Made by a program: the position numbers and the translations under genes. This document shows, in pieces, positions 4,650 to 53,971 of a DNA stretch of 64,000 nt. Position 1 is the stretch's first letter. Each line of letters opens with the position of its first letter. Where the stretch lies: positions 1-64,000 of IMG/VR virus record IMGVR_UViG_3300044846_005229. One strand, 5' to 3'. The notes beneath the pieces were generated by a model. It had not been told where the DNA came from. It searched no databases and saw only the letters and a list, made by a program, of their open reading frames with translations.

Positions 4650-6017
4650 TTAGACTCCTTCATAATACATATTGATATACTTACGTGCGTTCTGATTGCT
4701 GACTTTCTCCCATACCCCCCTTCTAAATGATTCTGCCGAATGTTGAATGCCGAATGTTGCTATATCTTTAGCCTCACTCTTCGTCAGTCCGTCTTTTTCC
4801 ATTTCTGTCATCACTTTATTGAAATTCCTTTCCAACACATCAGCTTGTTTGCCTGTCGGGTAATTTGTCATCGCGAAGTTAGTCCCTGTCCATCCACCTA
4901 AAGCTTCAGATAAGGCTGCTTTCCAGTTTTTCTGAGATAACCCCAAATCAACAAACCTGGCCACCCCCTTATCATCAATAATTAAATTATCGCCCTTAGC
5001 ATCATTGTGGGCATACCCTAGTTTATGCAATTTTCCCATAGTGATATTGTAAGCGTCATCTTTGTCAATGCCATTGATCTTTTGAGGGGCCTTGTAAAGG
5101 GGGACTCCTGGAACAACTTCCATAGCAATCATACCTTTGTGGATGGTACCGTTATCCATGTTGCTATGGGCATTCTTTACGAATCTGGAGGCTATTAATT
5201 TGGGGCCCAAACCGACTTCCCCCAGTTTTTTAATTAAGGTAGCCTCAGTTCTACCGATATCCCCAACCTTAACGCCAATTTCATTAGGCATTCCATCCGA
5301 GTATCCAAGTAACTTCTTCGTGGGTATCTTCAGGAATGCTCCATAGCCCCCTGCACCCAATACCCGGGAGCCTGATCCTTCAACTGCGCTCCACTTTACC
5401 TTATCTGCTTTCTCTGAGCCATCAATGCTTATAGTGCCTTCGGGGCCTAGCCTTTTCATTTTGTCTAATAACTTACTGGCGGCTTCTCTGACTTTTCTTA
5501 CCTTATCTGCAGGGATATCACCATTCTTATGGGTAGTCATTGGGGCTGAGGGCCGAGTCCGTGCCACAGTTTCTTTAGGGGTCTTAGGAACTGGTTGATT
5601 CTTTAGTTTCTTGGCAGCATTTATTCTGCCTATAAGGGTGCGAAACCTTTGAATGGCTTGGCCAAAAAATAGTCCCAAGTTGTGTTCTTTGTCTTGAGTT
5701 TGCTTATTTATTGGTGGTGAATTCTTTCCCGTAGGGGGGTTCTTAATTGGGGGATTTTGGACAGGGGTAAAGGCAACTGGTTTGGTAACACCAAAAATCC
5801 TGTCCCTTACTTTTATCAGAGAACCCACAACAACATCAGGCAACTCGATAAGACAAGTCTTCACCCCTTCGATACAAGTTGCTGAGCAGCTTTTACCGAT
5901 AGAGCACCTTTTACGACCACCCCCGACAGCATTTGATTTGGACTTCAGAATCTCAGAACTCGATGGCGCATTGCCGGAGGGTGCCGCAAAGTTGAATTGT
6001 CCTTCACCATTTACCAC
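4650..6017 (-). CDS. Cys4-module protein with C-terminal protein-kinase-like domain (kinase 1)
   Basis: N-terminal CSIGKSCSATCIEGVKTC; kinase motifs GAGGYG (Gly loop), GVKVG (Lys), HNDAKGDN (catalytic loop), FVDLG (DFG-like). Confidence 0.75.
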   Translation of the reverse strand: MVNGEGQFNFAAPSGNAPSSSEILKSKSNAVGGGRKRCSIGKSCSATCIEGVKTCLIELPDVVVGSLIKVRDRIFGVTKPVAFTPVQNPPIKNPPTGKNSPPINKQTQDKEHNLGLFFGQAIQRFRTLIGRINAAKKLKNQPVPKTPKETVARTRPSAPMTTHKNGDIPADKVRKVREAASKLLDKMKRLGPEGTISIDGSEKADKVKWSAVEGSGSRVLGAGGYGAFLKIPTKKLLGYSDGMPNEIGVKVGDIGRTEATLIKKLGEVGLGPKLIASRFVKNAHSNMDNGTIHKGMIAMEVVPGVPLYKAPQKINGIDKDDAYNITMGKLHKLGYAHNDAKGDNLIIDDKGVARFVDLGLSQKNWKAALSEALGGWTGTNFAMTNYPTGKQADVLERNFNKVMTEMEKDGLTKSEAKDIATFGIQHSAESFRRGVWEKVSNQNARKYINMYYEGV

Positions 6018-6026
6018 GCGGTGCCT

Positions 6027-6206
6027 TTAACCCAGATATTGCCAAGCAGTGACTACATCCTCAGATACCAACCCATCAATATCCATCTTTTGAGCAGCGT
6101 CTAGGGCCCTAAGGGATTCAACCCGCTTGGCAGGGTCTCTGCGTAACTTTTTGTAACGCTCCATGAGCTTTTGGTATTTGTCGTCGTTGCTTAGTTGAGA
6201 TGCCAT
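6027..6206 (-). CDS. Small helical protein (59 aa), paralogue of 50001..50168
   Basis: Hand-translated MASQLSNDDKYQKLMERYKKLRRDPAKRVE...; below ORF-track cutoff; shares KYQKLM..YK..RRDPA with the 55-aa ORF at 50001..50168. Confidence 0.65.
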   Translation of the reverse strand: MASQLSNDDKYQKLMERYKKLRRDPAKRVESLRALDAAQKMDIDGLVSEDVVTAWQYLG

Positions 6207-6281
6207 TTGTTATGGGGGAGTTTTGAGTTATCAGGCTGTTAAGCCGCATACACCTATTATACCCCGTGGTCGCTGCCTTTG

Positions 6282-6407
6282 TCAACCTTCCTCTCGGTCT
6301 TCTTCGGATTTGATGAAATCCTTAAGGTCTTTGACATATACGCGAAGATCTTGGGCCTTTTGAAGATGCCAATGTTGTTTAGTTTTCAAGTAAAGCATCA
6401 TGTGGTT
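6282..6407 (-). pseudogene. 3' part of a 67-aa conserved cyanophage-type hypothetical gene interrupted by the IS605 element
   Basis: NHMMLYLKTKQHWHLQKAQDLRVYVKDLKDFIKSEEDREEG*; joins in frame with 7976..8053 when the IS is removed. Confidence 0.8.
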
Positions 6408-6600
6408 TTGACTTCCTCCCCGCCGTGAACGGCGGAGATTCCTTCTACGCTGCGCATGGGGATGCCTCAGCGATCGGGTGGGTTGGCGCTTCACAGCCTG
6501 CTGCCACCAAAGCGGTGGACTGATGCGTGGCTCCACGCCCGTTTCGACCCTCCGCCAGTCCGGCGGCGAGAATGTTCAAGGCAGCGTTGATGTCACGGTC
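6408..6600 (-). ncRNA. Predicted TnpB omegaRNA/reRNA scaffold (3' of tnpB to right end; guide is the flank AACCACATGATGCTTT...)
   Basis: Established for IS605 TnpB systems that the RNA overlaps the tnpB 3' end and right end; hairpins visible; 5' boundary is a guess. Confidence 0.55.
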
Positions 6601-7653
6601 GTGGACCGTTCCGCAGCTCGGGCACTGCCACTCCCGAATCGAAAGATCCTTCTTGCCGTCGTGATGCCCGCAGGTTGAGCACACCTGGCTGGTGGGGGGC
6701 CATCGGTTGATGACCACCACTTCACGCCCGTACTGCTCAGCCTTGGACTCCAGCAGGATCCGCAGCTGACGCCAGCCTGCATCGGCAATCGAGCGGGCCA
6801 GCTTCCTGTTCTTCAGCATCCCCGACACATTCAGGTCTTCCAGCACCACCGTTTGGTTCTCACGGATGAGGCGGGTCGAAAGCTGATGCTGATAGTCGAG
6901 GCGCCGATCGCCAACCTTGGCGTGCAGCTTGGCCACCTTGCGCCTGGCGATTACCAAGCGGTTGGAACCCCGTTGCTTGTGCTTCAGGTTGCGCTGTAGC
7001 CGCCGCAGTCGCTTGAGCGCAGAGCGCAGGAACTTCGGCGGGGCGAGCTTTTCACCGTCAGAAGTGACGGCGAGGGATACCAAGCCTAGGTCGATGCCAA
7101 CCGCCCTGCCATTCGCTGGCAAAGGAGTCGGCTCAATATCCACAACGAAGCTGGCGAAGAATCGCCCACTTGCATCGCGGATGACGGTGACGCTGCTCGG
7201 ATCCGAAGGCAGATCCCGGCTCCACTCAATCGGCACCGGGCCGATCTTGCTGAGCGTCAGCGTCCTCCCCCCTGTGCGGAACACATGGGACATGAAGCAA
7301 ACGGACTGCGCACCACGGCGCTTTTTGAAGCGTGGCGGCTTGACCTTCGCGCCCTTGCGCTTGCCTTTCAGGCTGGCCCACCAGTTGCGGTACGCCTGAT
7401 CGAGGTTGCGCACGGACTGCTGCAGCACCACATTGCTGGGCTCCGCCAGCCACTGCCGCTCTGGCGTCTGCTTGGCCTGCGTGATGCAGAGCTTGGCCAG
7501 GACGGGGTAGCTGGTCTTTTGCCCAGCGGCATACAGCTCACGGCTCTTGGCCAGGGCGTCGTTCCATACCACACGGGCGCAGCCGAACGCACGAGCCAGC
7601 GCCACCTGCTGATGCGGGTGGGGGTAGAGCCGGAAGCGGTAGCGTTGCTTCAT
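6445..7653 (-). CDS. tnpB: RNA-guided endonuclease TnpB
   Basis: MKQRYRFRLYP HTH start; RuvC-I GIDLG, RuvC-II VVLEDLNV, zinc finger CSTC/CPSC, RuvC-III HDRDINAA; all catalytic residues present. Confidence 0.95.
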   Translation of the reverse strand: MKQRYRFRLYPHPHQQVALARAFGCARVVWNDALAKSRELYAAGQKTSYPVLAKLCITQAKQTPERQWLAEPSNVVLQQSVRNLDQAYRNWWASLKGKRKGAKVKPPRFKKRRGAQSVCFMSHVFRTGGRTLTLSKIGPVPIEWSRDLPSDPSSVTVIRDASGRFFASFVVDIEPTPLPANGRAVGIDLGLVSLAVTSDGEKLAPPKFLRSALKRLRRLQRNLKHKQRGSNRLVIARRKVAKLHAKVGDRRLDYQHQLSTRLIRENQTVVLEDLNVSGMLKNRKLARSIADAGWRQLRILLESKAEQYGREVVVINRWPPTSQVCSTCGHHDGKKDLSIREWQCPSCGTVHDRDINAALNILAAGLAEGRNGRGATHQSTALVAAGCEAPTHPIAEASPCAA

Positions 7654-7682
7654 ACCAACCACCATACCAAACTTGGGGTGCA

Positions 7683-7949
7683 ATGGCGCAACCACCGCTT
7701 AGGCGAGGAAGGCACAGCGTTTCTCGGCTTGTCGTTCATTTGGTCTTTGTGGTCAAGTATCGGCGCAAGGCGCTGAGCGGGGCGGCATTGGATCGGATGC
7801 ACGAGGTCTGCCTGGGCATTGCCGAGCGGATGGGCTTCCAGCTGCTTGAGCTGAACGGCGAAGCAGACCATGTGCATCTGCTGGCGGGGCGCCCATCGAG
7901 CGTCTCAGGGAGTATGTGGAGTCTCAGGAAAAGCCGTCCTCAAGGACGG
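7683..7949 (+). pseudogene. tnpA: IS200-type Y1 transposase remnant (internal deletion plus frameshift)
   Basis: N-terminal ...HLVFVVKYRR...ADHVHLL (HUH) fused at ~7882/7883 to an out-of-frame C-terminal GGAPIERLREYVESQ (catalytic Tyr helix); the central part is missing. Confidence 0.85.
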
Positions 7950-7975
7950 GGTTTGTGTCCCAGAACAGCCCCGTT

Positions 7976-8053
7976 ATCAATGGCTTTAAGCAAGCTATGA
8001 ATTACTGGGTTCCACGGGCCCCTTATTGGGTTATCCCATTCTCTTTTTGACAT
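7976..8053 (-). pseudogene. 5' part of the IS-interrupted hypothetical gene
   Basis: MSKREWDNPIRGPWNPVIHSLLKAID, ending exactly at the TTGAT target. Confidence 0.8.
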
Positions 8054-8079
8054 TTGACCTACCTACTATTCTATGGGCA

Positions 8080-8811
8080 TCACTTAATAACATTGAGACT
8101 TCTATTGAAGTACATCCTGCGGTCTTCCAACCCATTATAACCACCATTTACTCTGCGGGTAACTTGTTCTACGGTGGGATTCTTATCACATAGGGCATTC
8201 ATCCCATTGTTAAACCACCAAAAACCTGCCGAGGAAAATGGATACTTATCAGCTACATAATTAGCCCCTTGCATAACTTGTGGATCTTTGATAAAATTGG
8301 CAAAGTCCTGATAGTTTGCTCTACCTGTAAGCTGAATGTAACCGGCACCTTTGAAGCGGGGGCCATCCCCCGGTTGGGTATTTCCCAGATCTTTCCTACC
8401 TTCGTAATCCCAACCCGAAGCCAACTCTTTCTTCCAGCGACCACCACCAGATTCATGCGCAGTTTGACTAAGGAAATGACGAATTCTTTGCGGAGTTGTG
8501 ATTGCAAATTCTTCTAGACATCTATTAAGTTCGGTTACTTCAGAATCTAAAATCAAGCTTGGGGCACATTGCCAAATATATGCCAGAGACTCTTTGGAAA
8601 CATACTGCTTTGGGGTTGGTGGCCTAGTGGGAGTTGGTGGTTTGTAGGGTGTACGATATTTCCTTACCCAACTAGCCTCATCTGTAAATAGTTCGGGTTG
8701 TTTAGCAAAAACCGCCTTGGCAAAATCCAAAAAGGCACTTTCTTGAAGGGGGTTGTCTGTTCTACGGTTATTGACAAAATCTAAGAATTTCTCTGCAGTG
8801 AATTGGGGCAT
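8080..8811 (-). CDS. Endolysin, glycoside hydrolase family 19 (chitinase-like lysozyme)
   Basis: [41 protein letters not shown] motifs; likely start MPQF at 8811. Confidence 0.88.
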
Positions 8812-8864
8812 CTTGTTTCGGGTATCTATTGCTATTTTACCCGCCTCATCACATCCAGACCTAA

Positions 8865-9557
8865 CTACGTCAACCCTGGTCCTGCCCCTTGCTCCCCAGA
8901 TGGGGTACATTTATTTCGATTATTTTGGGCCATCTGCGTCTCAGACTGCTCAGGTTTAGGGTTCTTTGGCATTTCTTCTTGGGAGTCTACCTTTGGTTGT
9001 GCTGTGGGCACTTTAGAGTCTTCCCTTGGCTTCCTTGGTGGCCATACCTTGCCAGTAGTCAACCCCTGTGGTGGTTCTTCAAATGAACGCAAACCCTTTA
9101 ATTGCAGAGATCTAGGGCCAGGTTGTGGATTTTCGCTAGGGGTAGCTAAAGGCGGCAATTTACCGGACTCATTTTCTTTTAGTTTGCCTTGACTACCTTT
9201 TTGTTTCCCTGGCTTATTATCAATATCCATGGTTGATAAACCTTGGGCTCTGGTAGTTTTGTTTTCTTTGGGGGTTTCCCCACCGGTACTGCCCTTATCG
9301 AATTGCCTATCCCATGCACCGGACTCCAACATCTTAGAAACCCTATTTGCAGATTCCTGGGAGAATCCAATTGATTGTAAGGCCTCAGCATAGTCGCCCC
9401 TTTTGCAAGCAGATAATGAAATCGCAATTGCTTGCTTAGGATTTTCTACCACTGGGCCAGCCTTGCCAGCTTTGCCAAAACCAGAATGAAGTTTGCCAGC
9501 TTTGAACCGGCGCATTTCATCCCTGACGCAATTTTTATCGTCTGGATTGACTGGCAT
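8865..9557 (-). CDS. Hypothetical protein with DUF6496-like basic N-terminal motif
   Basis: [12 protein letters not shown]...KQAIAISLS motif; low-complexity C-terminus. Confidence 0.5.
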
Positions 9558-9563: not shown

Positions 9564-9773
9564 CTACCGAATTTCCAAAATTTTACCCTCTAGTTCCTCT
9601 ATGTAGTCTAATAGGGCCGTGGTCTGAGCCGATAGCTTTATTAGTAGACAAGAACTTTCAACAAGGTATTCTTCCAGCTCTTGTCTGGATAGAAGATTAA
9701 TTTTTTCCCTAATTTTGAAAGGAATTAGTTCCTTTTCTAGGGGTAATTCAATTTGTGGCCTTTGGAAGTCCAT
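9564..9773 (-). CDS. NblA-like small helical protein (possible phycobilisome degradation factor)
   Basis: 69 aa; ELPLEKE...LSRQELEEYLVE pattern resembles NblA (L.LEQ.F...MS.EQ...L.E); divergent. Confidence 0.4.
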   Translation of the reverse strand: MDFQRPQIELPLEKELIPFKIREKINLLSRQELEEYLVESSCLLIKLSAQTTALLDYIEELEGKILEIR

Positions 9774-10428
9774 GGGCTATTTGTTTAAGGGATTGAAATT
9801 TTTCTGATGCCCAGTGGTGTTGGTCTTCCCCCATGACTGCCTCACTGATGTAATCAACCATGAGATCCATCTCTTCGTCTGACAATACACTGAAAGCTTC
9901 AGCTAGATCATCTGATAAGAGCAGCGTCCGAGCCTCATCTGGGCTATAAACAAAGTCGGTATCTACCCAGTCTTCAGGTTGAGAGTCATAGGAGATGTGG
10001 TAGTTGTTTTCTGATAGTTGGCATTCCAGGACTCTAGCCTCGTCAATGTTTAACTTTTTGGCTATGTCGGTGTAGCTCATGTTTTCCTGTAAAAGCCCTA
10101 GGACCTCATTGCGATACTTGGCGATCCATCGGGGGGTTTTCACAAGCCTGGAATAATCTCGAAGAGCATGTTGGATGTATCCTCGGGCATTTTTCCAGGC
10201 GTAGGTGCTGAATTTAACGTGTTTGTCAGGGTCAAACCTGGTAGCAGCTACGCAAAGAGCAAAGTTTGCTATGGACTCTAGATCCTCCCTAGTGAGAGAA
10301 CCTGTATTGCCACCTGTTAAACACTTGGCTCCAAAAGCTAATCGACCAGCAATCCAGCTATGCTCTTCGACTAGTTTCTTTTGGTCTCTGGATAGTCCAG
10401 GGTACGATTTGTACCTCTTTTTTGTCAT
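9748..10428 (-). CDS. Phage RNA polymerase sigma-70-family factor (sigma A of window)
   Basis: Region 2 EDLESIANFALCVAATRFDPDKHVKFSTYAWKNARGYIQHALRD; HTH SYTDIAKKLNIDEARV. Confidence 0.85.
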   Translation of the reverse strand: MTKKRYKSYPGLSRDQKKLVEEHSWIAGRLAFGAKCLTGGNTGSLTREDLESIANFALCVAATRFDPDKHVKFSTYAWKNARGYIQHALRDYSRLVKTPRWIAKYRNEVLGLLQENMSYTDIAKKLNIDEARVLECQLSENNYHISYDSQPEDWVDTDFVYSPDEARTLLLSDDLAEAFSVLSDEEMDLMVDYISEAVMGEDQHHWASEKFQSLKQIAHGLPKATN

Positions 10429-10431
10429 GGG

Positions 10432-12372
10432 TTAAGCCTCGCAAGCTGTGCAATCTGTGTATTCTGGGGTGGTTTCTGTGGGCAGATTAAACTTTAAGAC
10501 ACTGTTTTCTTCTTTGTACTGCATGTACTCGGTATAGCCCCCGATGTGCTTATCGTAAAGCCATAATTGAGGGACGGTTTTCCAGTCGTGGTTCCAGTAA
10601 CCCTTGTCAATAGCCTCTTGTTTGTCCATCTCTTTATAAGTAATACCACAGCGGTAGAGTTCTTGTTTCAGGCTGTCGCACCAAGGGCACCCTTCCTTGG
10701 TAACGATGAGAGCTGGGGCTTTCTTTTTCTTCGTTAGAAGAGAACTCGACTTAAGGTAATAAAGAGATTTGAGACCCATTTTCCAAGCAGACAGGTGAAG
10801 ACGCATAATATAATCTGCATCAGCTTCGGGGTCAACAAACAGGTTTAGGGATTGCCCTTGGCAAATAAAGGGTTGACGATCAGCGGCTTGTTTCACAAGC
10901 TCAAACTGATCAACTTCCCGAGCTGTCTTAAACACCTCTTTTTCCTTGTCCGTCAAGCAAGCAAGTCCTTGAACACTGCCCCTGGCTTCCAGAATCTCGT
11001 CCCACACTTCTGGCCCAACCCCTTTTTTACAAAGTAGGCTCTCAAGAATAGGGTTCTTCCGAACATATGAACCTTTGGCTTGCTTCGCTACGAAATAGTT
11101 CGAGGCAATGGGTTCAATTCCTTCCGACCCCGCTCCGCAAATAACACTATTTGTTTTTGTTGGAGCAACGGCTAACAAATGTGTATGGCGCTTCCCACTA
11201 CCGACACACCACTCAGGTTCCCCCAGCTTGACTGCCAGCTCCCTTGAAGCAGTTTCGGCCTCTTGGAGGATCCATTTGTGAACCTGGGTATTAAGTTCCC
11301 TGGCTTCTTGGGACTTAAAGGGTAAGCCTCTTTTCTGATAGAGGGTATGCAGGCCCATGACCCCTAAGCCCAATGCACGAGACTTCTCAGCGAAACGGAC
11401 CGAACGGCCCATCCCCACTTTGTCCTTAGCCTTGCGAATGAACTCGGAAACAACGGATTCTAGAAGGTGGACAGCAATCTGAGGCACTGAGCGGCCAGAA
11501 ACAGGGGAGCGCCAATCCTTAAACTCGTCGTATTTCGATAAGTTAAGAGAGGAAAGGACACAAACAAAGGAATGGTTTTCGTCGGTATGAAGAAACACTT
11601 CGGAACACAAATTACTCGTCTTCACTGTCAGCCCTCTCTCAACGTAACAGGCAGGGTTCTGATTGTTGGCGTTGTCAATGAAGATAAGGTAAGGGCTACC
11701 TGAAATCATTCTTGTCTTGAGTACCTCTCCAAAAAGCTCTTGTTTTTCCTTGTTACCTGCGATCATGGATTCTATCCATTCGTCTGTGATCGTTAGGGCT
11801 ATGTTACTGTCAATTTTTTGACGAGAGTCCCCGTTAGCATGATCTTTTGCTCTAAGGATTTCTGGCACGTCGGGGTGTGATATGGGCAGATACATCGCAA
11901 AGGATCCGCGACGAACACCCCCTTGGGAGACAACTGAAGCGCATAAGTCGTATTGCCTAGCCCAAGGGACTATGCCTGTAGACTTTCCACCGCCAGAAAT
12001 TGGAGTTCCTGCGGGCCTCACATCCCCAAAGTACACACCAACTCCTCCACCATTCTTACTCAAAGAAGCCACCTCCTTTAGATGGGAATAGATCGAGGAT
12101 ATACTATCGGTAAGATGTATAGAAAAACAACTTATAGGTTGCCCACGATTGGTACCAAAGTTGGAACAAACTGGACTTGCAGGTCCGATAAAACCATTCC
12201 ACAAACAGTGAAAGAGATCTTCTTCTAGGGTCGGATCTTGATTGAGTTTGGCTGCTGTTGAGGACAATCTCGTCATCATATCACGAGGTGTCTCACCAGG
12301 TAGTAAGTACCCTGCAGACAATGTGTGCAAAGCCTCTTCAGACATCCATTCGGGGTGAGGTGTATTGGTCAT
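10432..12372 (-). CDS. nrdA: Ribonucleotide reductase class Ia alpha subunit with fused glutaredoxin domain
   Basis: PISCF, NLCSE, VCVLSS, YYLKS catalytic motifs; then Grx domain (CPWC...TVPQ...IGGY) and terminal CTACEA. Confidence 0.93.
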   Translation of the reverse strand: MTNTPHPEWMSEEALHTLSAGYLLPGETPRDMMTRLSSTAAKLNQDPTLEEDLFHCLWNGFIGPASPVCSNFGTNRGQPISCFSIHLTDSISSIYSHLKEVASLSKNGGGVGVYFGDVRPAGTPISGGGKSTGIVPWARQYDLCASVVSQGGVRRGSFAMYLPISHPDVPEILRAKDHANGDSRQKIDSNIALTITDEWIESMIAGNKEKQELFGEVLKTRMISGSPYLIFIDNANNQNPACYVERGLTVKTSNLCSEVFLHTDENHSFVCVLSSLNLSKYDEFKDWRSPVSGRSVPQIAVHLLESVVSEFIRKAKDKVGMGRSVRFAEKSRALGLGVMGLHTLYQKRGLPFKSQEARELNTQVHKWILQEAETASRELAVKLGEPEWCVGSGKRHTHLLAVAPTKTNSVICGAGSEGIEPIASNYFVAKQAKGSYVRKNPILESLLCKKGVGPEVWDEILEARGSVQGLACLTDKEKEVFKTAREVDQFELVKQAADRQPFICQGQSLNLFVDPEADADYIMRLHLSAWKMGLKSLYYLKSSSLLTKKKKAPALIVTKEGCPWCDSLKQELYRCGITYKEMDKQEAIDKGYWNHDWKTVPQLWLYDKHIGGYTEYMQYKEENSVLKFNLPTETTPEYTDCTACEA

Positions 12373-13130
12373 TTTATTGAGTTCAGGAAAGTTGTCAAGG
12401 CTTGTAAGCTAGTTAGATTTAAATTTAACTCTGAATTGCAGGCCTTAGGCCCAACTATTCTACCATTTGGACTTTTTCTGTTTTTGTTAAGACTCCACCA
12501 CTCACGAATCCTACCGGAGTTGTCCGAAACGATAGCATAGTTGGGGTACCTTTTGCGAAGGAGTTCTTCAGACTCTTTTTTACCTTTTTTGTACTGGTTC
12601 CCCATTCTAGATAAAGACATTTTACGCTTGGCTTCGTCTGAAGCTTGTTTACCTTTTCTAGATTCTGACATTTTGCTCCTAGCTTCTGAGCTGTGTGTCC
12701 TGCCAAAAGAGGGATGGTCCTTCCCTCTACGCCCGTACATGGGATTTTTTTCCCCTTTATTATCAAACCCCATCTCTTTTAGAGCCTTTTTAACCCCCTC
12801 GGAGATAGCTAGTCTTTCTTTCTCTGTTCTAGGTCTACCCTTGTTATAGGCTTTAAGCCCAGTGGTGTCAAACTTGGTAGAAGTTTGGCAGGATCTGTTG
12901 ACGAACTCAGGGTTAGAAACAACTTCAAACACGTTCTGCCATTGTATTTCTGCTTTAGTTGCTGCTTCAGGTGAGTTAAATATTCCTAAAATAATCCTAG
13001 AGTCAGGGTTGAAAGTTTTATCAGAGAAGGACCCTAAATACTGGTCATAAAGGTCGTTAGTGCTGTGTTTTCCTATGTAATTTCGGCCATTATGGCTACC
13101 CTCATAGCTCAGATAAACTAAATGCCACAT
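12369..13130 (-). CDS. Free-standing GIY-YIG homing endonuclease with NUMOD3-like repeats
   Basis: HLVYLSY...NYIGKHST...YLGS and conserved Glu (KAEIQW); NPMYG/HPSFGRTHSSEARSKMS repeats. Confidence 0.85.
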   Translation of the reverse strand: MWHLVYLSYEGSHNGRNYIGKHSTNDLYDQYLGSFSDKTFNPDSRIILGIFNSPEAATKAEIQWQNVFEVVSNPEFVNRSCQTSTKFDTTGLKAYNKGRPRTEKERLAISEGVKKALKEMGFDNKGEKNPMYGRRGKDHPSFGRTHSSEARSKMSESRKGKQASDEAKRKMSLSRMGNQYKKGKKESEELLRKRYPNYAIVSDNSGRIREWWSLNKNRKSPNGRIVGPKACNSELNLNLTSLQALTTFLNSIK

Positions 13131-45094: not shown

Positions 45095-46292
45095 TTAATC
45101 CTTAGAGTAGTCTTTGACTCCGTCATACAAAATGTCGATAACTTTGGCAGCGTCCTTGTTTGATAGCTTGGCCCATGGGCCTTTCTCGTATGACTTCAGG
45201 GGCTGCCCAACCCGGGACACAATCATCTGGGTAATTTCGTTGTTAGAGATGCCGTGACTCCTGAGCGCGTCGTAGACTTTGGGTAAATTATCTCTCATTT
45301 TTAATAGATTTTGAGGGGCATCTCTCTTGATTGACCCTTTATACGTCCCCATTTGGGGGTCTGTTTTTGATCTATGGTCCCCAGAAGTCAAGGGATCGGT
45401 TTTTCTAAGGTCGAAAGTCGAACTTTTTGGCAAAAACGCTTTATTAGTAAAAACCCCTAGTGCTTCAGATAACGCGGCTTTAACGCTTTGCTGAGATAAG
45501 CCCATATCAACAAACCTGGACTTACCGTTTTTATCGATTAAGACATTATCTCTATGGGCATCATTGTGGGCTATTCCGAGTTTATGAATCCGTGATCTCA
45601 GGAACCAGTAAGCGTCCCCTATAGTGGTTTTTCCAACTTTGTCTGAAGACTTACTAAAGTTACCATAACTCTCACCTGGCACCAGGCCCATAACTATACG
45701 ACCATTTATGATGTAAACACCACCCTCTGCCTTTGGTTTGCCTTTGGCTATTTCCCCCATATATCAGTTTAGGGCCTAGACCGGCTTTCCCTAAGATTTG
45801 AGTTATTTCCGCTTCCGTTGTACTTACCTGGCCACGTTTAACGGCATAGCTCGGGTTTCCCTTTATCAAGAGCACAGTACCAAACCCACCTTCCCCTAAT
45901 TTGGTTCCTTTACTTAGGGACCCCGACCAGTCAAATTGATCCTTAGTACCATTAATGACCCTGCCTACCTTGAAACTAGAGTCAAAATCAGAAGCATCAT
46001 CTCTGGCCCATTGTGTGTTGCCAGTAATTATTTTTCCTGGCTTCTTGATTGACTCTTGATTTACTTTGGGTACAGATTTTGTGCTTGCTTTTGTGTTTGG
46101 TTCCACCCTCGCCAAGTAGTCTTCCAGACTTTCCTTGGCATCATCGATGAAACTAGCATCAATAGACCCGGATATACGGTCAATAGATTTAGATATGTCA
46201 TCCCCAAAATCAACCCTACAAACCTTTAGTCGGGCTATACATGTTGACCCGCATGATTTTCCTATATCACACCTATCCCCTTTACCAAACAC
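45095..46292 (-). pseudogene. Cys4-module protein kinase-like gene (kinase 2), split by +1 frameshift in G5 run at 45754-45758
   Basis: CDIGKSCGSTCIARLKVC, GEGGFG, AVKRG upstream; HNDAHRDN, FVDMG downstream. Deleting one G gives ...GPKLIYGEIAK... and a 398-aa ORF. Confidence 0.75.
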
Positions 46293-46296: not shown

Positions 46297-46731
46297 TCAG
46301 CCCCCGTTTAGTAAAGTCTCTAGTCTAGCGATTCGGTTTGATACTGTGTCTATCTTTTCGGAATACGACAATTCTTCACCCGTGGCGATTCGGTGATCAT
46401 CGGTATTCTTTCTGGCTAGGTCCAAGGTAGCCATCTTGGCATCAATGTCTTCGCGCTTCTTGACTAGTTCCTTAACTTGCTTCATTTGTTCTTGCAAGGA
46501 TTGAAACGCACCCCTCTGACGGGAGATTTTCATTTTCTCGTTTAGGGACTCTATTTGGCTGGTTAAATCCGTATGCTTTTTCCCAAGGTCTCCATACTCG
46601 CTATAACTAGGTCGAAGGCCCAGGACTACTGTAGGCTCCATTACGGTACCTTTGGCATAATCTGTGGGCTTATGGGAATAAGCTTGGATCGCCTTATCGT
46701 ATGCTTCTTTTGAGATTTTATCTTTTCTCAT
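46297..46731 (-). CDS. Coiled-coil hypothetical protein
   Basis: 144 aa; GGGTAAA 23 nt upstream. Confidence 0.6.
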   Translation of the reverse strand: MRKDKISKEAYDKAIQAYSHKPTDYAKGTVMEPTVVLGLRPSYSEYGDLGKKHTDLTSQIESLNEKMKISRQRGAFQSLQEQMKQVKELVKKREDIDAKMATLDLARKNTDDHRIATGEELSYSEKIDTVSNRIARLETLLNGG

Positions 46732-46760
46732 TTTAAGAGTCCATTATGTTTTCTTTTACC

Positions 46761-47151
46761 CTAATTGAAGTCGATGTTTTTTCTGGCCATAATGTCCATG
46801 GCTTCATTCCATTTAAATCGATTCGACCACCAGGAAGACGATGATGGTCCTTTAGCAATATTTTTTGCGTGACGGGCTTTGAATTTTTTACGCTTCATCT
46901 TCATGCGTTCAGATTCACCTTCTTTAGGTGACCCAGCGGTTTCTGCGCCCTTTTGGCCAAATTTTTTTCAATTCTTCCTCACCATCATGGCACCATTTGA
47001 CCACATGGCTTTTATCATCGCCAGGTTTTGTGGGGCGAGGTTTATTACAAGCCATTTTAGACTTATCGTAAGTCTCCCCAAACTGCTCAGCAAACATGTT
47101 ATAGAATGCCTCTAGGGCTTCATCGCTGAAATTTGCACTACCGTAAAGCAT
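46761..47151 (-). pseudogene. Basic conserved phage protein split by +1 frameshift in A7 run at 46962-46968
   Basis: Removing one A gives ...KSHVVKWCHDGEEELKKFGQKGAETAG...FKARHAKNIAKGPSSSSWWSNRFKW... (129 aa). Confidence 0.6.
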
Positions 47152-47567
47152 TACTCTTTCTCTCCATGTTTCAAATAGTCTGCAATTGCTGTTAAACTGT
47201 GGGAAGCTTCTGAAATTTTTGATGCTATCCAGGGGTCTGAGTTGCTATTGGGGGTGATCATTCCTAAGGAAGTGGCGATACTATCCTGCATTGATTTTAA
47301 CTGGGCAATTAGCATACCGCCATTAGGTTCGAAATCAGCGTCCCCTTCCCCCATGGTAAAAGTCGATGGTTTTGTGATGGGTTCTTTTTCCATACCAGGG
47401 GCAATGGCCATCTTATCCATTGGGGTAAGGTTGGGCTTTTGACCCCCTGATGCTTCACCAGATCTAGTCGCCCTGGAACCTTTAGCACCTTTGGCAGCAT
47501 TCTCCACAAAATTCAAGTCAAAGCCCAAACCTTGGAGACGTTTCCAATCGTACTCAGAAATAGTCAT
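47151..47567 (-). CDS. Hypothetical (candidate head-internal) protein
   Basis: N-terminus EYDWKRLQGLGFDLNFVE nearly identical to 48391..48891. Confidence 0.6.
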   Translation of the reverse strand: MTISEYDWKRLQGLGFDLNFVENAAKGAKGSRATRSGEASGGQKPNLTPMDKMAIAPGMEKEPITKPSTFTMGEGDADFEPNGGMLIAQLKSMQDSIATSLGMITPNSNSDPWIASKISEASHSLTAIADYLKHGEKE

Positions 47568-48390: not shown

Positions 48391-48891
48391 TTATTTGGTT
48401 TGAGAGTGCTTTTTCCAAAGGTCGTTATCAGCCTGGCGAGCCTTACCAACTCCTGTAATAAATGAATTCACTCTGGCTAATGCCCATTGCTGCGGGGATA
48501 CTCCGGGTCGGTGGCCGGAACGCCATGCTGCGATCCCCCTACTGTATACTTCTCCCAGAATACTAGTAGAAATGCCAGACTTTTCCGATTTTGCTTTTAG
48601 TGCTTTGCTAGACCCCTCTGAATACTTATCATCGAAGGCTTTAGTTGCGGGGGATTCAGGGATTTTTTTGTTTCTTTTTCTGAACTTATCGTCAGATTCC
48701 CAATCTTTGTATAGGTCTTTGGGTGATACTCTAGGGTCTTTAGCCTTTTGCATTGTATCTTTGGCTTCTTCCTTGGCGATTGTTTGTTCCTTAGGGGTCA
48801 ATCCTTTTTTATACCTGGCGGGTAGGGCCATCTCTACAAACTGCAAATCAAAGCCAAGACCTTGTAGGCGGTTCCAGTCGTATTCCATCAA
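48391..48891 (-). CDS. DUF5824-like phage protein
   Basis: KSGISTSILGEVYSRGIAAWRSGHRPGVSPQQWALARVNSF. Confidence 0.6.
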   Translation of the reverse strand: MMEYDWNRLQGLGFDLQFVEMALPARYKKGLTPKEQTIAKEEAKDTMQKAKDPRVSPKDLYKDWESDDKFRKRNKKIPESPATKAFDDKYSEGSSKALKAKSEKSGISTSILGEVYSRGIAAWRSGHRPGVSPQQWALARVNSFITGVGKARQADNDLWKKHSQTK

Positions 48892-49604
48892 TTGCCATCC
48901 GGTAAACCACTACCACCATTTTCAAGCCTTTGCCTGACAGTTTCCGGTAAACCAGATTCCCATTTGTTTTTGATCGCGATGCGGATGATAGCAGCCATGA
49001 CTTTACGTGGATCAGCAGTGCGACCTACGGATGACCATGCAGCAGCGACATCTTGGGGACTGGCAATTGGGAAAGACATTCCGGGGCCTGCGAATTCCCC
49101 CTTTGTTTTTTCTGCCTTTAGTTTTTCCCTGGACTCAGCATCCCATTCCCTGAATTTTGCTGAATTGCCTGATTTCGCGTTACATGAGCTACATTTACAA
49201 TTACCCGATTGGCAAGACTTGCATCCGCCTTCTTTGAACGGTTGGGGGATTGACATCAGTTCAGTATCGTCTGCAAAATTATATTCTTTTCTTTTAAGTT
49301 CTTTGAAAGAATCCATTCTAGCTTTGCGGCGACCCATGATTTCCTTCATGGCATCAGCTCCGTCAGCGTGGCTATCATAGTCCCTATTGACTAGGTTGGC
49401 CCTCCGTTCTCTGATGGCCTTATTGCCCTTTAGAATAGCCTCCTTGTGCATCGACAAGCCACCTTCAGGAGTGGGGGACCATTTACGGCCGATTTTATTC
49501 CTTTTCATCAACTGATCAGTAGAAATGGCATTACTGGCATTTAACTGTCCCCCGACACCCGGCAAGAGTACAGAGGAGAAATCCATGTGTTCTCCGTAAG
49601 GCAT
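48888..49604 (-). CDS. Hypothetical protein with DUF6582-like C-terminal domain
   Basis: FAGPGMSFPIASPQDVAAAWSSVGR...IIRIA. Confidence 0.55.
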   Translation of the reverse strand: MPYGEHMDFSSVLLPGVGGQLNASNAISTDQLMKRNKIGRKWSPTPEGGLSMHKEAILKGNKAIRERRANLVNRDYDSHADGADAMKEIMGRRKARMDSFKELKRKEYNFADDTELMSIPQPFKEGGCKSCQSGNCKCSSCNAKSGNSAKFREWDAESREKLKAEKTKGEFAGPGMSFPIASPQDVAAAWSSVGRTADPRKVMAAIIRIAIKNKWESGLPETVRQRLENGGSGLPDGN

Positions 49605-49629
49605 AAGAGTAGTTAGAAACTTATTTCTT

Positions 49630-49950: not shown

Positions 49951-50000
49951 TGCCCTACAGCGAATCTACTTAGATTTACCCTTTGCTGACTGGTTAATTC

Positions 50001-50168: not shown

Positions 50169-50179
50169 TTTACTTGCCA

Positions 50180-51379
50180 TCAGACCCCATCATATAGAAG
50201 GTCAATGTATTTCTTAGCCTGTATGTCAGAGATTTTTGACCAGGATGAGTTGGTATTGAAATACTCATCTTTTTGCCTAATGTTGGTATTTTGAAATTTT
50301 CTAACGTCAGAATCTGACAAACTATCGGCTTTCATGGCTTCTACTACTGTTCTGATATTTGAACTAATTAAGTTAAAAATTTTTCCCCTACCATAGGCAT
50401 CCAATTGTCGTTCAGCTTCAAAGTCTGCCCCCGTCCTACTAGCACCACCTAAAGCCTCTGCAAGAGCTGCTTTACGGGAAACCTGGGCTAGCCCTAAGTC
50501 AACGAATCTTGCCACACCCTTACTATCAATCATCGTATTACCACCGTGGGTATCATTATGGGCTACACCCAACCTGTGAATTTTAGCCCTAGCTGTCCAG
50601 TAAGCGTCCCTTGTCTCTATGCCATTGACGACGTTGGGGGACTTGCCAAGCCGGGTCCCTTGTACCACCCCCATCGCGATTCTGCCTGTGGCCACCATGT
50701 ATTTTCCAGCCCCGAACTCTCCGTGCTGGGCAGCAATAAATTTAGGTCCCATGTTAGCTTTGCCGACAATCTTGAGAGCTTCTGCTTCATGGAGACCTAT
50801 TTCCCCAGCCTTAATACCTACATTCCTACCTAACGCACCGTTCGGAACTTTGAAGAACGCTCCAAACATGCCCTCACCCATTTGAACTGCATTAGGGTTA
50901 CCTACGGCGTTCCAATCAATGGATTTAGCTGCTTTACTACCGTCAACGTCCCTAAGTTTGAAACCAGGGGCGTCTATTACGTCGTAGACTTCTTTAGCTT
51001 TTGCGGGGAGGTTAACTACGGGGGCCTTAGCCGTGGGTTTTGCTACTTGGACTTCTGCTGCGGGCTTTGCCATGGGGGCCTTAGCCGCCGGAACCTTCGC
51101 TACCGGTTTTGCTACTTGGACTTCTGCTGCGGGGGGGCCCACTAGTGGTAACTTACGTTGGGCCAATATCTGATTAGCAACCTTAGTAATCACGGGGTTT
51201 AAAGCCCAAGGGATATCAACCATACAAACATGGTAGCCAGGGATACAGGACGCCCCGCAAGATTTACCCATCTTGCACTTTTTTTTCTTTAATTTAGGCA
51301 AATCAGAGCCACCTAGCCTAGCTATTTGGCCCCTCTTAGCGGCATTAATTTGAGCTTCTGTTCTTCCTAGGACTGCCAT
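50180..51379 (-). CDS. Cys4-module protein with protein-kinase-like domain (kinase 3)
   Basis: CKMGKSCGASCIPGYHVC; GEGMFG, GIKAG, HNDTHGGN, FVDLG; duplicated PAAEVQVAKP linker. Confidence 0.75.
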   Translation of the reverse strand: MAVLGRTEAQINAAKRGQIARLGGSDLPKLKKKKCKMGKSCGASCIPGYHVCMVDIPWALNPVITKVANQILAQRKLPLVGPPAAEVQVAKPVAKVPAAKAPMAKPAAEVQVAKPTAKAPVVNLPAKAKEVYDVIDAPGFKLRDVDGSKAAKSIDWNAVGNPNAVQMGEGMFGAFFKVPNGALGRNVGIKAGEIGLHEAEALKIVGKANMGPKFIAAQHGEFGAGKYMVATGRIAMGVVQGTRLGKSPNVVNGIETRDAYWTARAKIHRLGVAHNDTHGGNTMIDSKGVARFVDLGLAQVSRKAALAEALGGASRTGADFEAERQLDAYGRGKIFNLISSNIRTVVEAMKADSLSDSDVRKFQNTNIRQKDEYFNTNSSWSKISDIQAKKYIDLLYDGV

Positions 51380-51406
51380 TGAAATTAGGGTATTTATGCT
51401 TTAAAT

Positions 51407-52039
51407 TTACCCAATTTGCTCTTTGTCGTTGTATTCCCCGTCTTCATCTTCATCATCTTCATCATCATCGTCGTCCTCATCATCATTACCGTCTTCATCA
51501 CTACCTTCGCTAAGGATCTCATCGATTAGGGTATCAATTTCATCTTCATTTAGTTCTTCTTCCCCTTCGACTTCGGACTCCCCATAAGGGTCTTCTTCGT
51601 ATTGAGTTTCGTTGTCGTTGTCGTCAGAGTCACTTTCTGCGTCATCGTCAGAATCGCCCTCATCCGAACCCCAAATCTCTTCAGAAAGGCGTTCAAATTC
51701 TTCATCGGTTAGGAATGTTGAGTTTTCATCTGAATCTTTAATATCATCGGCATCTTCGGCATCGTCATCAACTTCACCGGCACCATCGTCTGGGCTAGCC
51801 GGAAAATAATCGTCGGGATTGAATGGCTGGTTGGGTTTAAAGTCACGGGACATACCATCATTAGCCTTCCAAAGCCCGGTATGCTGAATCCAGGGAGAGG
51901 TATTATGGACTACGTTAGTTGGCAACCCATTAATAGGGTCAATTTCGTGATCTTCAGGGTTTGACAATTGAGCTGCATAAGCTGCGCGGAAAGCTTCAAT
52001 GGCATCCTGTTCAAAATCGCCGTTGATTCTATTCGTCAT
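51407..52039 (-). CDS. Highly acidic protein (Asp/Glu-rich C-terminal half)
   Basis: DDEDDDDDEDDEDEDGEY tracts; N-terminal FEQDAIEAF. Confidence 0.65.
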   Translation of the reverse strand: MTNRINGDFEQDAIEAFRAAYAAQLSNPEDHEIDPINGLPTNVVHNTSPWIQHTGLWKANDGMSRDFKPNQPFNPDDYFPASPDDGAGEVDDDAEDADDIKDSDENSTFLTDEEFERLSEEIWGSDEGDSDDDAESDSDDNDNETQYEEDPYGESEVEGEEELNEDEIDTLIDEILSEGSDEDGNDDEDDDDDEDDEDEDGEYNDKEQIG

Positions 52040-52210
52040 TTGTTTGAGGGGGTCGGTATTGGGGAGTTTAAGTGTTGGGGGGGGGTGTTGGGGGTGTTGG
52101 GCCCTGGTCCATTCAGCTTTCAGTTTTTAGGCTTATTTCAGCAAATGTTGAAAGTGTACCCCGAGACATACTTAGACCAATGATTATTACCCATCGTGCT
52201 GGCGGTGGGG

Positions 52211-52570
52211 TCACCACTTTTCAATTTTACCAGAGATATCTTGCAATAACTTGCTATTGCCTTGGAGTTTCTCTTCATATTGCCTTATGGTGGCCTTGAC
52301 TTCGGCCTTTAATTTACCCTCTTTAATGAGACGTTCCTTTCTCTCATCGTCGGTTTCTTCCTTTTCAGCATGATTTCCGTCAGCATCATGATTTCCGTCG
52401 GCATTGTCAGCATCATCAATAACCACGGGGTGAATCTCATGAGTTAACCTATCTAGGAGTTTATCCATAGAGTCTTTCAAGCCTTTCCTACATACGGAAT
52501 CGGCAGAAATTTCCATGGGGCCGCAAGGAATCCTGTATAAGTCTCTAATTTTAGCCTCAGTTTTGTCCAT
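52211..52570 (-). CDS. Hypothetical protein
   Basis: 119 aa; DADGNH duplication. Confidence 0.55.
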   Translation of the reverse strand: MDKTEAKIRDLYRIPCGPMEISADSVCRKGLKDSMDKLLDRLTHEIHPVVIDDADNADGNHDADGNHAEKEETDDERKERLIKEGKLKAEVKATIRQYEEKLQGNSKLLQDISGKIEKW

Positions 52571-52571
52571 G

Positions 52572-52907
52572 TCAAGCCCCTTCTCTAGGTTTTAAAATCC
52601 ATTCATTTTCGTAATCCGTGTAATGGATACCTTTTCTTTTTTCTAATCTCCTGGCAGGGTCTTTCTTGTTGGCTTCCCTCATACCGTTTACCATGGTGTC
52701 CCTCATGGCCCTAAGTTTTTCCTTAGGCACTTCACAGTGTGGGCTGTCCCTGTAGCTTCTATACCATTTACAAACTTCTGAGGGGTCATCAGATTGCAAC
52801 ATCATGTTCCAGATTCCCATTTCTTGATTGCCCGATAATGTATTGGGAGGTAGTTTTCCTTCTAGGTCTTCACGGGGCGGTCTATTAAATCTTGTGTCTC
52901 TTCTCAT
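52572..52907 (-). CDS. Hypothetical protein
   Basis: 111 aa. Confidence 0.55.
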   Translation of the reverse strand: MRRDTRFNRPPREDLEGKLPPNTLSGNQEMGIWNMMLQSDDPSEVCKWYRSYRDSPHCEVPKEKLRAMRDTMVNGMREANKKDPARRLEKRKGIHYTDYENEWILKPREGA

Positions 52908-53086
52908 TGGGTAGCTACCAGTAGGGCTTCCATTAGTTCATTTTTGATAAACTCAGATGATTCCATGTCCCCTCTTTTTCTCTCTAAATCGGATAAGGCA
53001 GACAGGGCTTTTGCATATTTATCGAAGTTTTCTTTATCGGAAGGTGCCTTACGAATTAAGACCTGGGCTTTTTCGATGCTATCCAT
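52904..53086 (-). CDS. Small helical protein downstream of the zincin gene
   Basis: 60 aa, starts 3 nt after the zincin stop. Confidence 0.55.
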   Translation of the reverse strand: MDSIEKAQVLIRKAPSDKENFDKYAKALSALSDLERKRGDMESSEFIKNELMEALLVATQ

Positions 53087-53089
53087 AGT

Positions 53090-53971
53090 TTATCTCAGTA
53101 AGTTCCCTTCCCTTAGAACAGACTCCACCAGTTCATATTCTGCTGGAAAAAGTTTTTTCATTTTGGGTCCAGCGAATATGTAACTTGAGAATAGCTCAGC
53201 ATAGTGCTCTAGTTGATTTGTTTTACTGTACGTGCTAACTCTTTTGAAGCTATCGGGAATTCCAACTTCTTTCGCTTTGAAGTGGGCGTGGTGCCCTAGT
53301 TCGTGAACTAATGTCACCAGTGTATTATTGCTGGCTGACCCTGGAGCTTTACCCATAGTATGTGGCAGTTCTTTACCTTGGGCGGCACTGGATAAATGCT
53401 TTTCGGCAGTGGCCTTGATTTTCTTTACTTGTGGGGTAAACCCTGGAGCTGACCGAATAACTGTGACCCCTTCTTTATACGCTAACCCGCCCCAAGTCTT
53501 ATTGTAGATTTTCTGCGAGATGGTGAAATCTGGGTTTTTGAAGTACCCCGAAAATGCGCTTCTGAAGGCTTCTTTGTTGCCTGCAATGTCCTTCCAGTCC
53601 ATGAATAGGGTCTTAGTCTTATTGAAAATCCTCTGGAGAACTTCTACTCTGCGAGGGGCGTCTGGGTCCAGGTTTTTTAAATCCCGGATGGCGCCCATGA
53701 TGGAGTTCCTGTTAAAGTCTATCTTTAGGTCGGGGTGAGCTTTTACTTCGCCACTTCTCATTAGCTTGATGAATTTCCCAAGGGAATCTGCAATATATGG
53801 GCTTAATTCAACTCTGCAAACTAAACCCCGTTGAATGCAAGTTGAGCGACAAGATTTCCCTAAAGAACATCTTTTCTTCCCGGACCCCCCCCATCTCTGG
53901 GGTGCGCCTAGGTGCTGAATAGTTCCAGCAATTGCAAAATCAAATTCTTTAGGGTTATCTATTTCGATCAT
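53090..53971 (-). CDS. Cys4-module protein with zincin metallopeptidase domain
   Basis: CSLGKSCRSTCIQRGLVC; HELGH (HExxH); STYSKTNQLEHYAELF (third ligand region). Confidence 0.75.
   Translation of the reverse strand: MIEIDNPKEFDFAIAGTIQHLGAPQRWGGSGKKRCSLGKSCRSTCIQRGLVCRVELSPYIADSLGKFIKLMRSGEVKAHPDLKIDFNRNSIMGAIRDLKNLDPDAPRRVEVLQRIFNKTKTLFMDWKDIAGNKEAFRSAFSGYFKNPDFTISQKIYNKTWGGLAYKEGVTVIRSAPGFTPQVKKIKATAEKHLSSAAQGKELPHTMGKAPGSASNNTLVTLVHELGHHAHFKAKEVGIPDSFKRVSTYSKTNQLEHYAELFSSYIFAGPKMKKLFPAEYELVESVLREGNLLR

Follow-up and report, generated by a model that had tools for sequence, protein, structure and literature searches.

Four genes in the window analysed here, the first 64 kb (64,000 nucleotides) of a large freshwater cyanophage genome, encode proteins that begin with the same four-cysteine (Cys4) module and continue into different enzyme domains, and this module represents a real, widespread and unnamed family that is apparently restricted to viruses. 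The window is positions 1 to 64,000 of IMG/VR record IMGVR_UViG_3300044846_005229 (110,489 bp), and its coordinates are identical in a complete 279,339-bp genome with direct terminal repeats (G002); the sequencing runs that contain it come from lake-water metagenomes. The closest cultured relative is Synechococcus phage S-CBWM1 (Aokuangvirus), with 54% identity in the large terminase subunit (TerL), no phage record is similar to the window at the DNA level, and the host is likely a cyanobacterium. A first-pass annotation of the window noted the shared module and proposed that it loads enzymes into the capsid for injection into the host. We confirm the observation and find the loading interpretation partly supported; on indirect and second-hand evidence, we lean modestly towards the module being a shared handle by which diverse enzymes enter the particle and are delivered along with the DNA.

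A Cys4 module at the N-termini of four genes

The four genes and the modules within them are all on the minus strand:

4650..6017, minus strand: 455-aa protein with Cys4 module, Pro-rich and basic linker, and RIO/Bud32-like kinase (Bud32 model, E 6.8e-6)
45095..46292, minus strand: Cys4 module and kinase-like gene in two overlapping open reading frames (ORFs; 45672-46292 and 45095-45760), split by a frameshift
50180..51379, minus strand: 399-aa protein with Cys4 module, Ala/Pro/Lys-rich linker, and RIO/Bud32-like kinase (kinase motifs)
53090..53971, minus strand: 293-aa protein with Cys4 module and lethal-factor-like (M34/ATLF-like) zincin at residues 72-293 (AlphaFold model)
5781..5924, minus strand: Cys4 module of the 455-aa kinase (pattern scan and alignment)
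46146..46289, minus strand: Cys4 module of the split kinase gene (pattern scan and alignment)
51152..51295, minus strand: Cys4 module of the 399-aa kinase (pattern scan and alignment)
53744..53887, minus strand: Cys4 module of the protease gene (residues 29-76)

All four peptides quoted in the first-pass annotation are present in frame near the N-termini of minus-strand ORFs, with the first Cys at residue 38 in 4650-6017, residue 8 in 45672-46292, and residue 35 in both 50180-51379 and 53090-53971. Scanning all six frames of the 110,489-bp record with the loose pattern C-x2-G-x2-C-x3-C-x6-C gives exactly four sites, and a strict-pattern scan of the same record gives the same four, each by the start of a long ORF; the occurrence of the module is therefore not a matter of chance. 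Alignment of the window proteins shows an invariant C, G-K-S-C, C-I and C, preceded by a basic flank and followed by hydrophobic periodicity; all four share the C-x5-C-x3-C-x6-C spacing, a Gly at +3, and Ile/Val following the third Cys. The residues following the fourth Cys are L-I-E, R-V-D, M-V-D and R-V-E, and identity over the rest of the N-terminal 100 residues is low, at about 32%.

Spanning about 45 residues, the module consists of a basic (KRKR-like) flank, a Cys4 hairpin and a helix. Modelled with AlphaFold from an alignment of 50 sequences, it has a predicted local distance difference test (pLDDT) score of 89, and contains a beta-hairpin bearing the second and third Cys, then the helix. 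The four cysteines probably hold a metal ion, either Zn or Fe.

The module family is widespread and apparently restricted to viruses

We searched IMG/VR and sequenced genomes with a degenerate DNA pattern of the motif. The strict DNA pattern is found in 100 stretches of IMG/VR, corresponding to 114 ORFs in which the motif is always near the N-terminus; there are often two to four module ORFs per contig, with a maximum of four within one 10.6-kb contig. A profile constructed from 50 diverse modules and searched against 1.84 billion representative proteins matches 709 clusters at E<=1e-3 and 170 at E<=1e-10, the clusters being less than 50% identical to each other. Module conservation, and the partner domains that come from the profile search, are described below for the best 150 of the 709 profile hits. 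Four Cys and the Gly are kept in 149 of these 150, the module is inside the first 100 residues in 98% of proteins of up to 800 aa, and most members have K/R at -1 to -4 before it. The family consensus is GG-K-R-K-R-C-x-K-G-K-S-C-[GS]-A-[TS]-C-I-x3-K-x-C-[LM]-V-[DE]-L-P, then a helix, with an acidic residue after the fourth Cys in 79% of members. The top profile hit (P0001) is a Cys/Lys repeat protein, and we reject it as a family member.

When the same pattern was applied to one genome from each of 185,579 prokaryote species, no genuine case was found; all 38 cellular-genome hits were rejected, 33 of them lacking the motif on translation and five being located in junk ORFs of 36-103 aa. Among 50,697 GenBank phages the pattern occurs in S-CBWM1 only. 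The suggestion in the first-pass annotation that the module lies outside any named family is borne out: no Pfam, NCBIfam or PHROG model covers it in our scans, there is no match by profile to PDB sequences, Foldseek finds nothing in the PDB or the AlphaFold clusters, and VIA-align finds nothing above Z 2.1. A literature search on the GKSC module returned nothing relevant, and a region-limited word search returned close relatives only. Two candidate identities, a BFD-like [2Fe-2S] domain (a weak match on one relative, E 0.024) and LPD5 (a protein-atlas lead with a score of 0.70), were not borne out by the Pfam scans.

The enzyme domains are kinases and a lethal-factor-like zincin

The first-pass annotation described the enzyme domains of the window proteins as three protein-kinase-like folds and one HExxH zincin, and both assignments hold. 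Two further features, on the minus strand, are relevant here:

53291..53305, minus strand: HExxH codons (residues 223-227) of the protease gene, invariant among homologues
45754..45758, minus strand: run of five G with a frame-breaking extra base in the split kinase gene (alignment to the intact orthologue L009:1602-2798)

The zincin is identified by its fold and invariant residues. Its AlphaFold model has pLDDT >90 for residues 72-293, and comparison of the trimmed model with solved structures using VIA-align gives the anthrax lethal factor catalytic domain (1yqy_A) as the top match, with Z 11.6 over 162 residues; the Pro-Pro endopeptidases PPEP-2/3 are next (Z 8.4), and nearly all of the top 50 are zincins. 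A Foldseek search of the PDB with the untrimmed protease model gives nothing significant, the floppy N-terminus being the probable cause. Residues H223, E224, H227, E255 and E259 are invariant in 11 homologues, with a downstream helix of the form E-x-[FY]-A-E, and among the matching viral structures are proteins named lethal factor, metalloprotease and minor capsid protein. Sequence-level relationships are more distant: the 293-aa protein has no family match, Pfam ATLF (gathering score 27.4 bits) included, relatives score 17.2-18.4 bits and are thus below the gathering score, and the PDB profile match of the window zincin to lethal factor is not significant (E 0.43).

The kinases keep the Gly-rich loop, the Lys, H-x-D-x4-N and D-x-G in alignments of the window proteins and their relatives, with those of the split gene distributed over both ORF pieces. 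The three proteins have sub-threshold matches only, to Pkinase, ABC1, APH and Bud32/RIO models; Pfam Pkinase scores are 20.2, 21.5 and 17.5 bits (cut-off 31.7 bits), and NCBIfam Bud32 scores are 25.7 and 21.2 bits (cut-off 125 bits). By their sequence motifs they are distant members of the protein kinase-like superfamily (RIO/Bud32/APH-like), and the matching regions of cultured cyanophages carry serine/threonine kinase annotation.

The first-pass annotation treated 45095-46292 as a single ORF, but a one-base frameshift splits the gene in two, with the module, linker and kinase N-lobe in 45672-46292 and the rest of the kinase in 45095-45760. An intact 398-aa orthologue is available at 92.5% nucleotide identity, relative to which the window has one extra G at about 45754-45758. 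The extra base is present in contigs of three independent lake runs (X1, X5 and X6), and the frame break is therefore real in this strain and not an assembly slip. A strain that is approximately 97% identical, from a fourth run (X9), has one base fewer at the G-run, and thus intact and broken forms of the kinase coexist in nature.

The module is joined to many unrelated partners

Across the family, the module is followed by a low-complexity linker and then by unrelated domains, consistent with the earlier proposal of a constant N-terminus with a swappable C-terminal enzyme. Kinases are one such partner, and about 33 of 149 partners are R-S-E ADP-ribosyltransferases by motif (Pfam assigns 7-11 of 113 to this class); a profile built from 15 of the motif-bearing proteins matches the Vis toxin, an ADP-ribosyltransferase, with E 4.6e-15. 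Zincin partners include two kinds of HExxH, an HNH-like family includes gp106 and gp174 of S-CBWM1, LPD1 with an ATLF-like domain is another partner, and several partner families are without any match. Zeta toxin (E 8e-22) and PGDYG partners are in adjacent module-led genes (L056:7805-8338 and 8342-9475, on a 90-kb viral contig), one with PGDYG and the other with the Zeta-toxin kinase domain. A first clustering by BLAST had suggested that about 80 of 118 partners are kinases; we dropped this figure, since motif counts resolve the component concerned into 22 kinases, about 33 ADP-ribosyltransferases and other proteins.

Partner exchange is also seen at a single syntenic position, which is bounded by two genes:

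56748-58478, minus strand: TerL, bounding the conserved TerL-PhoH slot
54071..54892, minus strand: PhoH-like gene, which with TerL marks the conserved slot; the Cys4 gene downstream varies among phages

A Cys4 gene occupies the slot downstream of TerL-PhoH in the window, where the protease gene is directly downstream of PhoH, and likewise in S-CBWM1 and a metagenomic relative (L160). The partner is the 293-aa zincin in the window, the 520-aa HNH-like gp106 in S-CBWM1, and a 615-aa HNH-like protein in L160. The window protease and gp106 align over just 14 residues, all of which are in the module.

Module-bearing proteins of S-CBWM1 and the virion

S-CBWM1 has five module genes, encoding gp106 (after PhoH), gp113 (RIO-like), gp161 (ChoK-like), gp162 (APH-like) and gp174; the last of these is annotated in GenBank as a virion structural protein and adjoins the major capsid gene. 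In GenBank, the starts annotated for gp113 and gp161 lie within or beyond the module, and in-frame upstream ATGs restore it:

gp113 (L110), S-CBWM1 70398/70464: corrected start codon, with the protein then beginning just before the module
gp161 (L111), S-CBWM1 117830/117887: corrected start codon, with the protein then beginning just before the module

A passage of PMC10665884, citing Xu 2018, reports APH-, ChoK- and Rio2-like kinases in S-CBWM1 virions, and these types correspond to the three module-bearing kinases of this phage; the PknB-like gp173, which lacks the module, is not among the kinases that the passage lists. According to this secondary report, then, homologues of the window proteins from one relative are found in virions, in keeping with the idea in the first-pass annotation that proteins of this kind are carried in the particle. 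The three outcomes that the annotation named as refuting its proposal do not apply: the module matches no known domain, its C-terminal partners are highly diverse, and homologues in S-CBWM1 are reported from virions. Virion-associated kinases are reported for cyanophages S-CBWM1, S-CRM01, S-TIM5 and S-CREM2 (PMC10665884), and the papers that we consulted on these kinases make no mention of a shared N-terminal module.

Does the module load enzymes into the particle?

We propose that the four genes are members of an apparently virus-only family with a common plan of basic flank, Cys4, amphipathic helix, flexible linker and varying enzyme. The module would bring the enzymes into the assembling phage particle, from which they would reach the next host cell together with the DNA and act ahead of phage gene expression; the kinases and ADP-ribosyltransferases may modify host proteins, and the lethal-factor-like zincin may cut host proteins or process co-packaged proteins. 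In support are the reported virion presence of the S-CBWM1 homologues, the position of three of the window Cys4 genes between terminase/PhoH and the tail fibres, the upstream GGGTAAA motif that these three share with structural genes, and the location of a 3641-aa three-module protein in a phage structural block. Loading, metal binding and injection are each things that we infer.

Several observations weigh against this proposal. The virion evidence is second-hand, concerns homologues from one relative rather than the proteins of the window, and comes down to a single-sentence secondary citation in PMC10665884, whose authors also note that abundant non-structural proteins can co-purify with virions. 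Whole genomes of S-CRM01, S-CREM2, S-B68 and S-TIM5 do not contain the module; S-CRM01 and S-CREM2 thus have virion kinases without it, and the module is not required for kinase packaging. The gene at 4650-6017 is outside the structural block, with a TnpB insertion, endolysin, sigma factor and ribonucleotide reductase as neighbours. In the full-length protease model the module is neither confidently modelled nor docked, and metal binding is deduced from the invariance of the cysteines and the confident compact model of the module. The module is found in phages with differing capsid gene sets, making a single capsid-side receptor hard to picture.

Nor does every member fit a simple N-terminal signal. 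About 12 of the 150 best hits are long, 900-3641 aa, and carry two or three modules, with copies in internal positions, and the complete genome of the window phage has a fifth module copy without an enzyme, a 145-aa module-plus-linker paralogue that is 82% identical to the N-terminal 90 residues of the 399-aa kinase. The picture of an N-terminal tag in the first-pass annotation is therefore too narrow. In the long proteins the modules lie between lipase/esterase, LRAT, GNAT, DnaJ and Rho_N-like segments, such that these proteins resemble chains of module-linker-enzyme units; the 3641-aa protein, with three modules, is encoded within a phage structural block, following the genes for MuF, capsid and head-tail proteins. 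A bolder form of the loading proposal, which we offer tentatively, is that the module is a portable metal-stabilised signal for encapsidation and co-ejection across unrelated tailed-phage lineages, such that whatever protein bears it would enter the head and travel with the DNA, and that in the giant proteins it delimits separately released units.

An alternative, to which we give perhaps one chance in a handful, is that the module acts after delivery or synthesis, as a basic metal-knuckle-plus-helix that binds nucleic acid or a host structure and concentrates the enzymes at the nucleoid, the incoming DNA or ribosomes. The strongly basic flank (K/R at -1 to -4) and the conserved helix after it are what such a unit might look like, repeated internal copies suit a binding unit better than a signal, the spread of the module over differing capsid types fits as well, and a weak Rho_N/HeH-like match (E 5e-4 to 2.5e-3, sub-cut-off) often follows the modules of long proteins. 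However, no known DNA- or RNA-binding domain is alike in sequence or fold, and binding alone explains neither the reported presence of S-CBWM1 module kinases in virions, as given in the passage cited above, nor the apparent absence of the module from cellular genomes. Binding of this type is also compatible with packaging, and the two are not exclusive.

Less likely again is that the module marks processing units, serving as a docking site for the prohead protease or for a module-bearing zincin, which would cut long multi-domain precursors down to single enzymes or trim off the N-terminal part, in the way that T4 loses its capsid-targeting sequence. The T4 prohead protease cuts at L/I-x-E sites, which the [LM]-V-[DE]-L-P following the fourth Cys resembles, but this acidic residue is lost in nearly all internal modules, and a folded Cys4 unit with a pLDDT of 89 would be an unusual cleavage site. 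The long proteins are apparent chains of module-linker-enzyme, a recurrent R-x-D-A-P with a basic stretch is located 8-12 residues ahead of internal modules, and lethal-factor-related zincins have been proposed to process polyvalent proteins (Iyer 2017, PMC5512222); nonetheless, many module-bearing contigs are without a zincin partner. Comparison with solved structures gave no match for the prohead peptidase of S-CBWM1.

Finally, we regard as least probable that the module is a stabilising or oligomerising cap without a sorting role, spread by duplication and recombination in one lineage and linked to virions by coincidence: the recent duplication of module-plus-linker alone (82% identity over 90 residues), the enzyme-less copies and the thin, secondary virion evidence are in its favour, but 709 clusters of less than 50% identity in differing phage types with many unrelated partners, a strictly conserved N-terminal position, and the fact that every S-CBWM1 module kinase is of a kind listed in the cited virion passage all speak against it.

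The GGGTAAA motif and the surroundings of the Cys4 genes

The first-pass annotation noted GGGTAAA upstream of the genes at 50180-51379 and 53090-53971. The motif is indeed present at both, 33 nt and 73 nt upstream, respectively, but is not specific to them, as it occurs genome-wide upstream of many genes. The instances closest to the Cys4 genes are:

51406..51412, minus strand: GGGTAAA 33 nt upstream of the start of the 399-aa kinase; one of the 12 copies described below
54038..54044, minus strand: GGGTAAA 73 nt upstream of the start of the protease gene
46755..46761, minus strand: GGGTAAA 30 nt upstream of 46297-46731

There are 23 copies on the coding strand of the window compared with 5.0 +/- 2.1 expected, and 12 are located 30-40 nt ahead of the start codons of a variety of genes, PhoH and a tail fibre among them; the longer form is GGGTAAA(A/T), with sites at, for example, 4499, 9588, 15924, 31527, 40211, 46761, 49635, 49981, 51412, 54926 and 63720. 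From its distribution we predict that GGGTAAA is a general promoter-like element and a candidate phage promoter; a phage-encoded sigma factor gene is located at 9748-10428. The split kinase starts 5 nt past the end of 46297-46731, and the two are therefore probably co-transcribed. The motif fits co-expression of three Cys4 genes with their neighbours, without specificity.

Almost all of the window genes are on the minus strand. In order of transcription, a head-tail adaptor gene is followed by two tandem TerL paralogues, PhoH, the Cys4 protease, small ORFs, a very acidic protein, a Cys4 kinase, further small ORFs, the split Cys4 kinase and two giant tail-fibre genes. Three of the Cys4 genes are thus between terminase/PhoH and the tail fibres, and for these the earlier description of genes among head and structural genes is accurate; it does not extend to 4650-6017, given the surroundings noted above.

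The TerL paralogues (55274-56692 and 56748-58478, both minus strand) are 32% identical over 465 residues, and S-CBWM1 has a single TerL in their place. Between the protease and the 399-aa kinase, 51407-52039 (minus strand) encodes a 210-aa protein whose C-terminal half is nearly all Asp/Glu and which has no family match; this gene stops 27 nt ahead of the Cys4 kinase gene start. Family scans of the small ORFs downstream of the Cys4 genes, where a polymorphic toxin system would have its cognate immunity gene, gave no match. Two genes in this region, 48391-48891 and 47151-47567 (both minus strand), share a second N-terminal motif, EYDWx(R/K)LQGLGFDLxFVE, which occurs in close relatives only in IMG/VR. 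The first of these also contains a DUF5824 domain (E 3e-20), which corresponds to the C-terminal end of a PHROG with cytidyltransferase annotation; proteins reported from cyanophage virions include a cytidylyltransferase (PMC10665884). The product of the gene at 48888-49604 (minus strand) is 238 aa long, has a cysteine cluster of another type (CKSCQSGNCKCSSC) and matches no family.

Directly upstream of the Cys4 kinase at 4650-6017 is a gene for TnpB, an IS200/IS605-type RNA-guided nuclease (6445-7695, minus strand; E 1.6e-71 to ISDra2 TnpB), within a 2-kb block of GC 0.587 compared with about 0.45 nearby, and this block looks like a recent insertion from a high-GC source. A homing-endonuclease-like gene (12369-13130, minus strand) is positioned between the genes for the large (10432-12372) and small (13130-14107) subunits of ribonucleotide reductase. 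Elsewhere in this genome, outside the window, the S-CBWM1 major capsid protein has a homologue in four separate pieces across 4.6 kb (G002:72076-76672), which suggests that the capsid gene holds intervening sequences (introns, inteins or homing elements).

Implications

The particle-borne proteins that act in the first minutes of infection are known mostly from a few model phages, and for cyanophage virion-associated kinases it is openly debated whether they are cargo or contaminants (PMC10665884). A short, searchable module common to the S-CBWM1 kinases of the types listed for virions and to hundreds of other enzymes, including ADP-ribosyltransferases, proteases, nucleases, Zeta toxins and lipases, gives a concrete candidate rule for cargo; if true, the sets of delivered effectors of many uncultured freshwater and estuarine phages would be predictable from sequence alone. 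Were the module indeed a portable signal, injected phage effectors would for the first time have a general marker readable from sequence, and chosen cargo could be loaded into phage particles by means of it. The module also connects single-enzyme effectors with giant polyvalent proteins, and its recognition corrects two reference start codons in S-CBWM1 (gp113 and gp161).

Comparison with known systems

As a domain the module is new, while its overall design is of a kind already known from other systems. MuF-type polymorphic toxins of temperate phages, reportedly described by Jamet et al. in 2017, are said to have partners including ADP-ribosyltransferases, Zeta toxin and metallopeptidases. 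They are alike in having a constant virion-linked N-terminus, swappable C-terminal enzymes, and genes near those for head and packaging functions. However, the constant part here is a 45-residue Cys4 module and not the approximately 300-residue Phage_Mu_F, there are several paralogues per genome, and the known module hosts are lytic cyanophage-like viruses rather than prophages. Phage_Mu_F (PF04233) has no match at E<=1 in the four window proteins, and they are therefore not MuF-type as the first-pass annotation had suggested; the zincin part has a weak phrog_241 tail match (E 0.07).

In T4, the capsid-targeting sequence (CTS) is an N-terminal element of about 10-19 residues without cysteines that is removed by the prohead protease, the cargo being loaded and injected with the DNA. 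The CTS-loaded internal proteins and Alt likewise have a short N-terminal element common to unrelated cargo, including an ADP-ribosyltransferase, whereas the module is a folded Cys4 unit with internal copies as well. T4 Alt is itself a packaged and injected ADP-ribosyltransferase (Iyer 2017, PMC5512222), a precedent for delivered enzymes.

For the zincin, residues 72-293 of the window protein are alike in fold to anthrax lethal factor and the Pro-Pro endopeptidases (M34), with HExxH and the E-x-[FY]-A-E helix in common; in contrast to lethal factor, there is no significant sequence similarity, the other lethal-factor domains are lacking, and the likely host is cyanobacterial. The window kinases are alike in type (RIO/APH/ChoK-like) to virion-associated cyanophage kinases, three of which carry the module in S-CBWM1, unlike the larger homologues in the T4-like phages S-CRM01, S-CREM2 and S-B68.

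The closest parallel in domain content is with the polyvalent proteins of phages and conjugative elements, for which DNA-coupled delivery is predicted (Iyer et al. 2017, PMC5512222); the word 'cysteine' is absent from the text of that paper, and the module does not match the Pfam LPD families. The repertoire in common with the module family comprises lethal-factor-like zincins, kinases, ADP-ribosyltransferases, Zeta toxin, GNAT, lipases and LPD1. Polyvalent proteins combine two or more effectors, whereas each window protein has one enzyme domain, so that the toolkit appears to be split into separate genes under a common module; five relatives (P0006, P0011, P0031, P0037 and P0087) do combine multiple effectors. 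The shared domain repertoire, together with the multi-module proteins, thus ties the module family to the polyvalent proteins.

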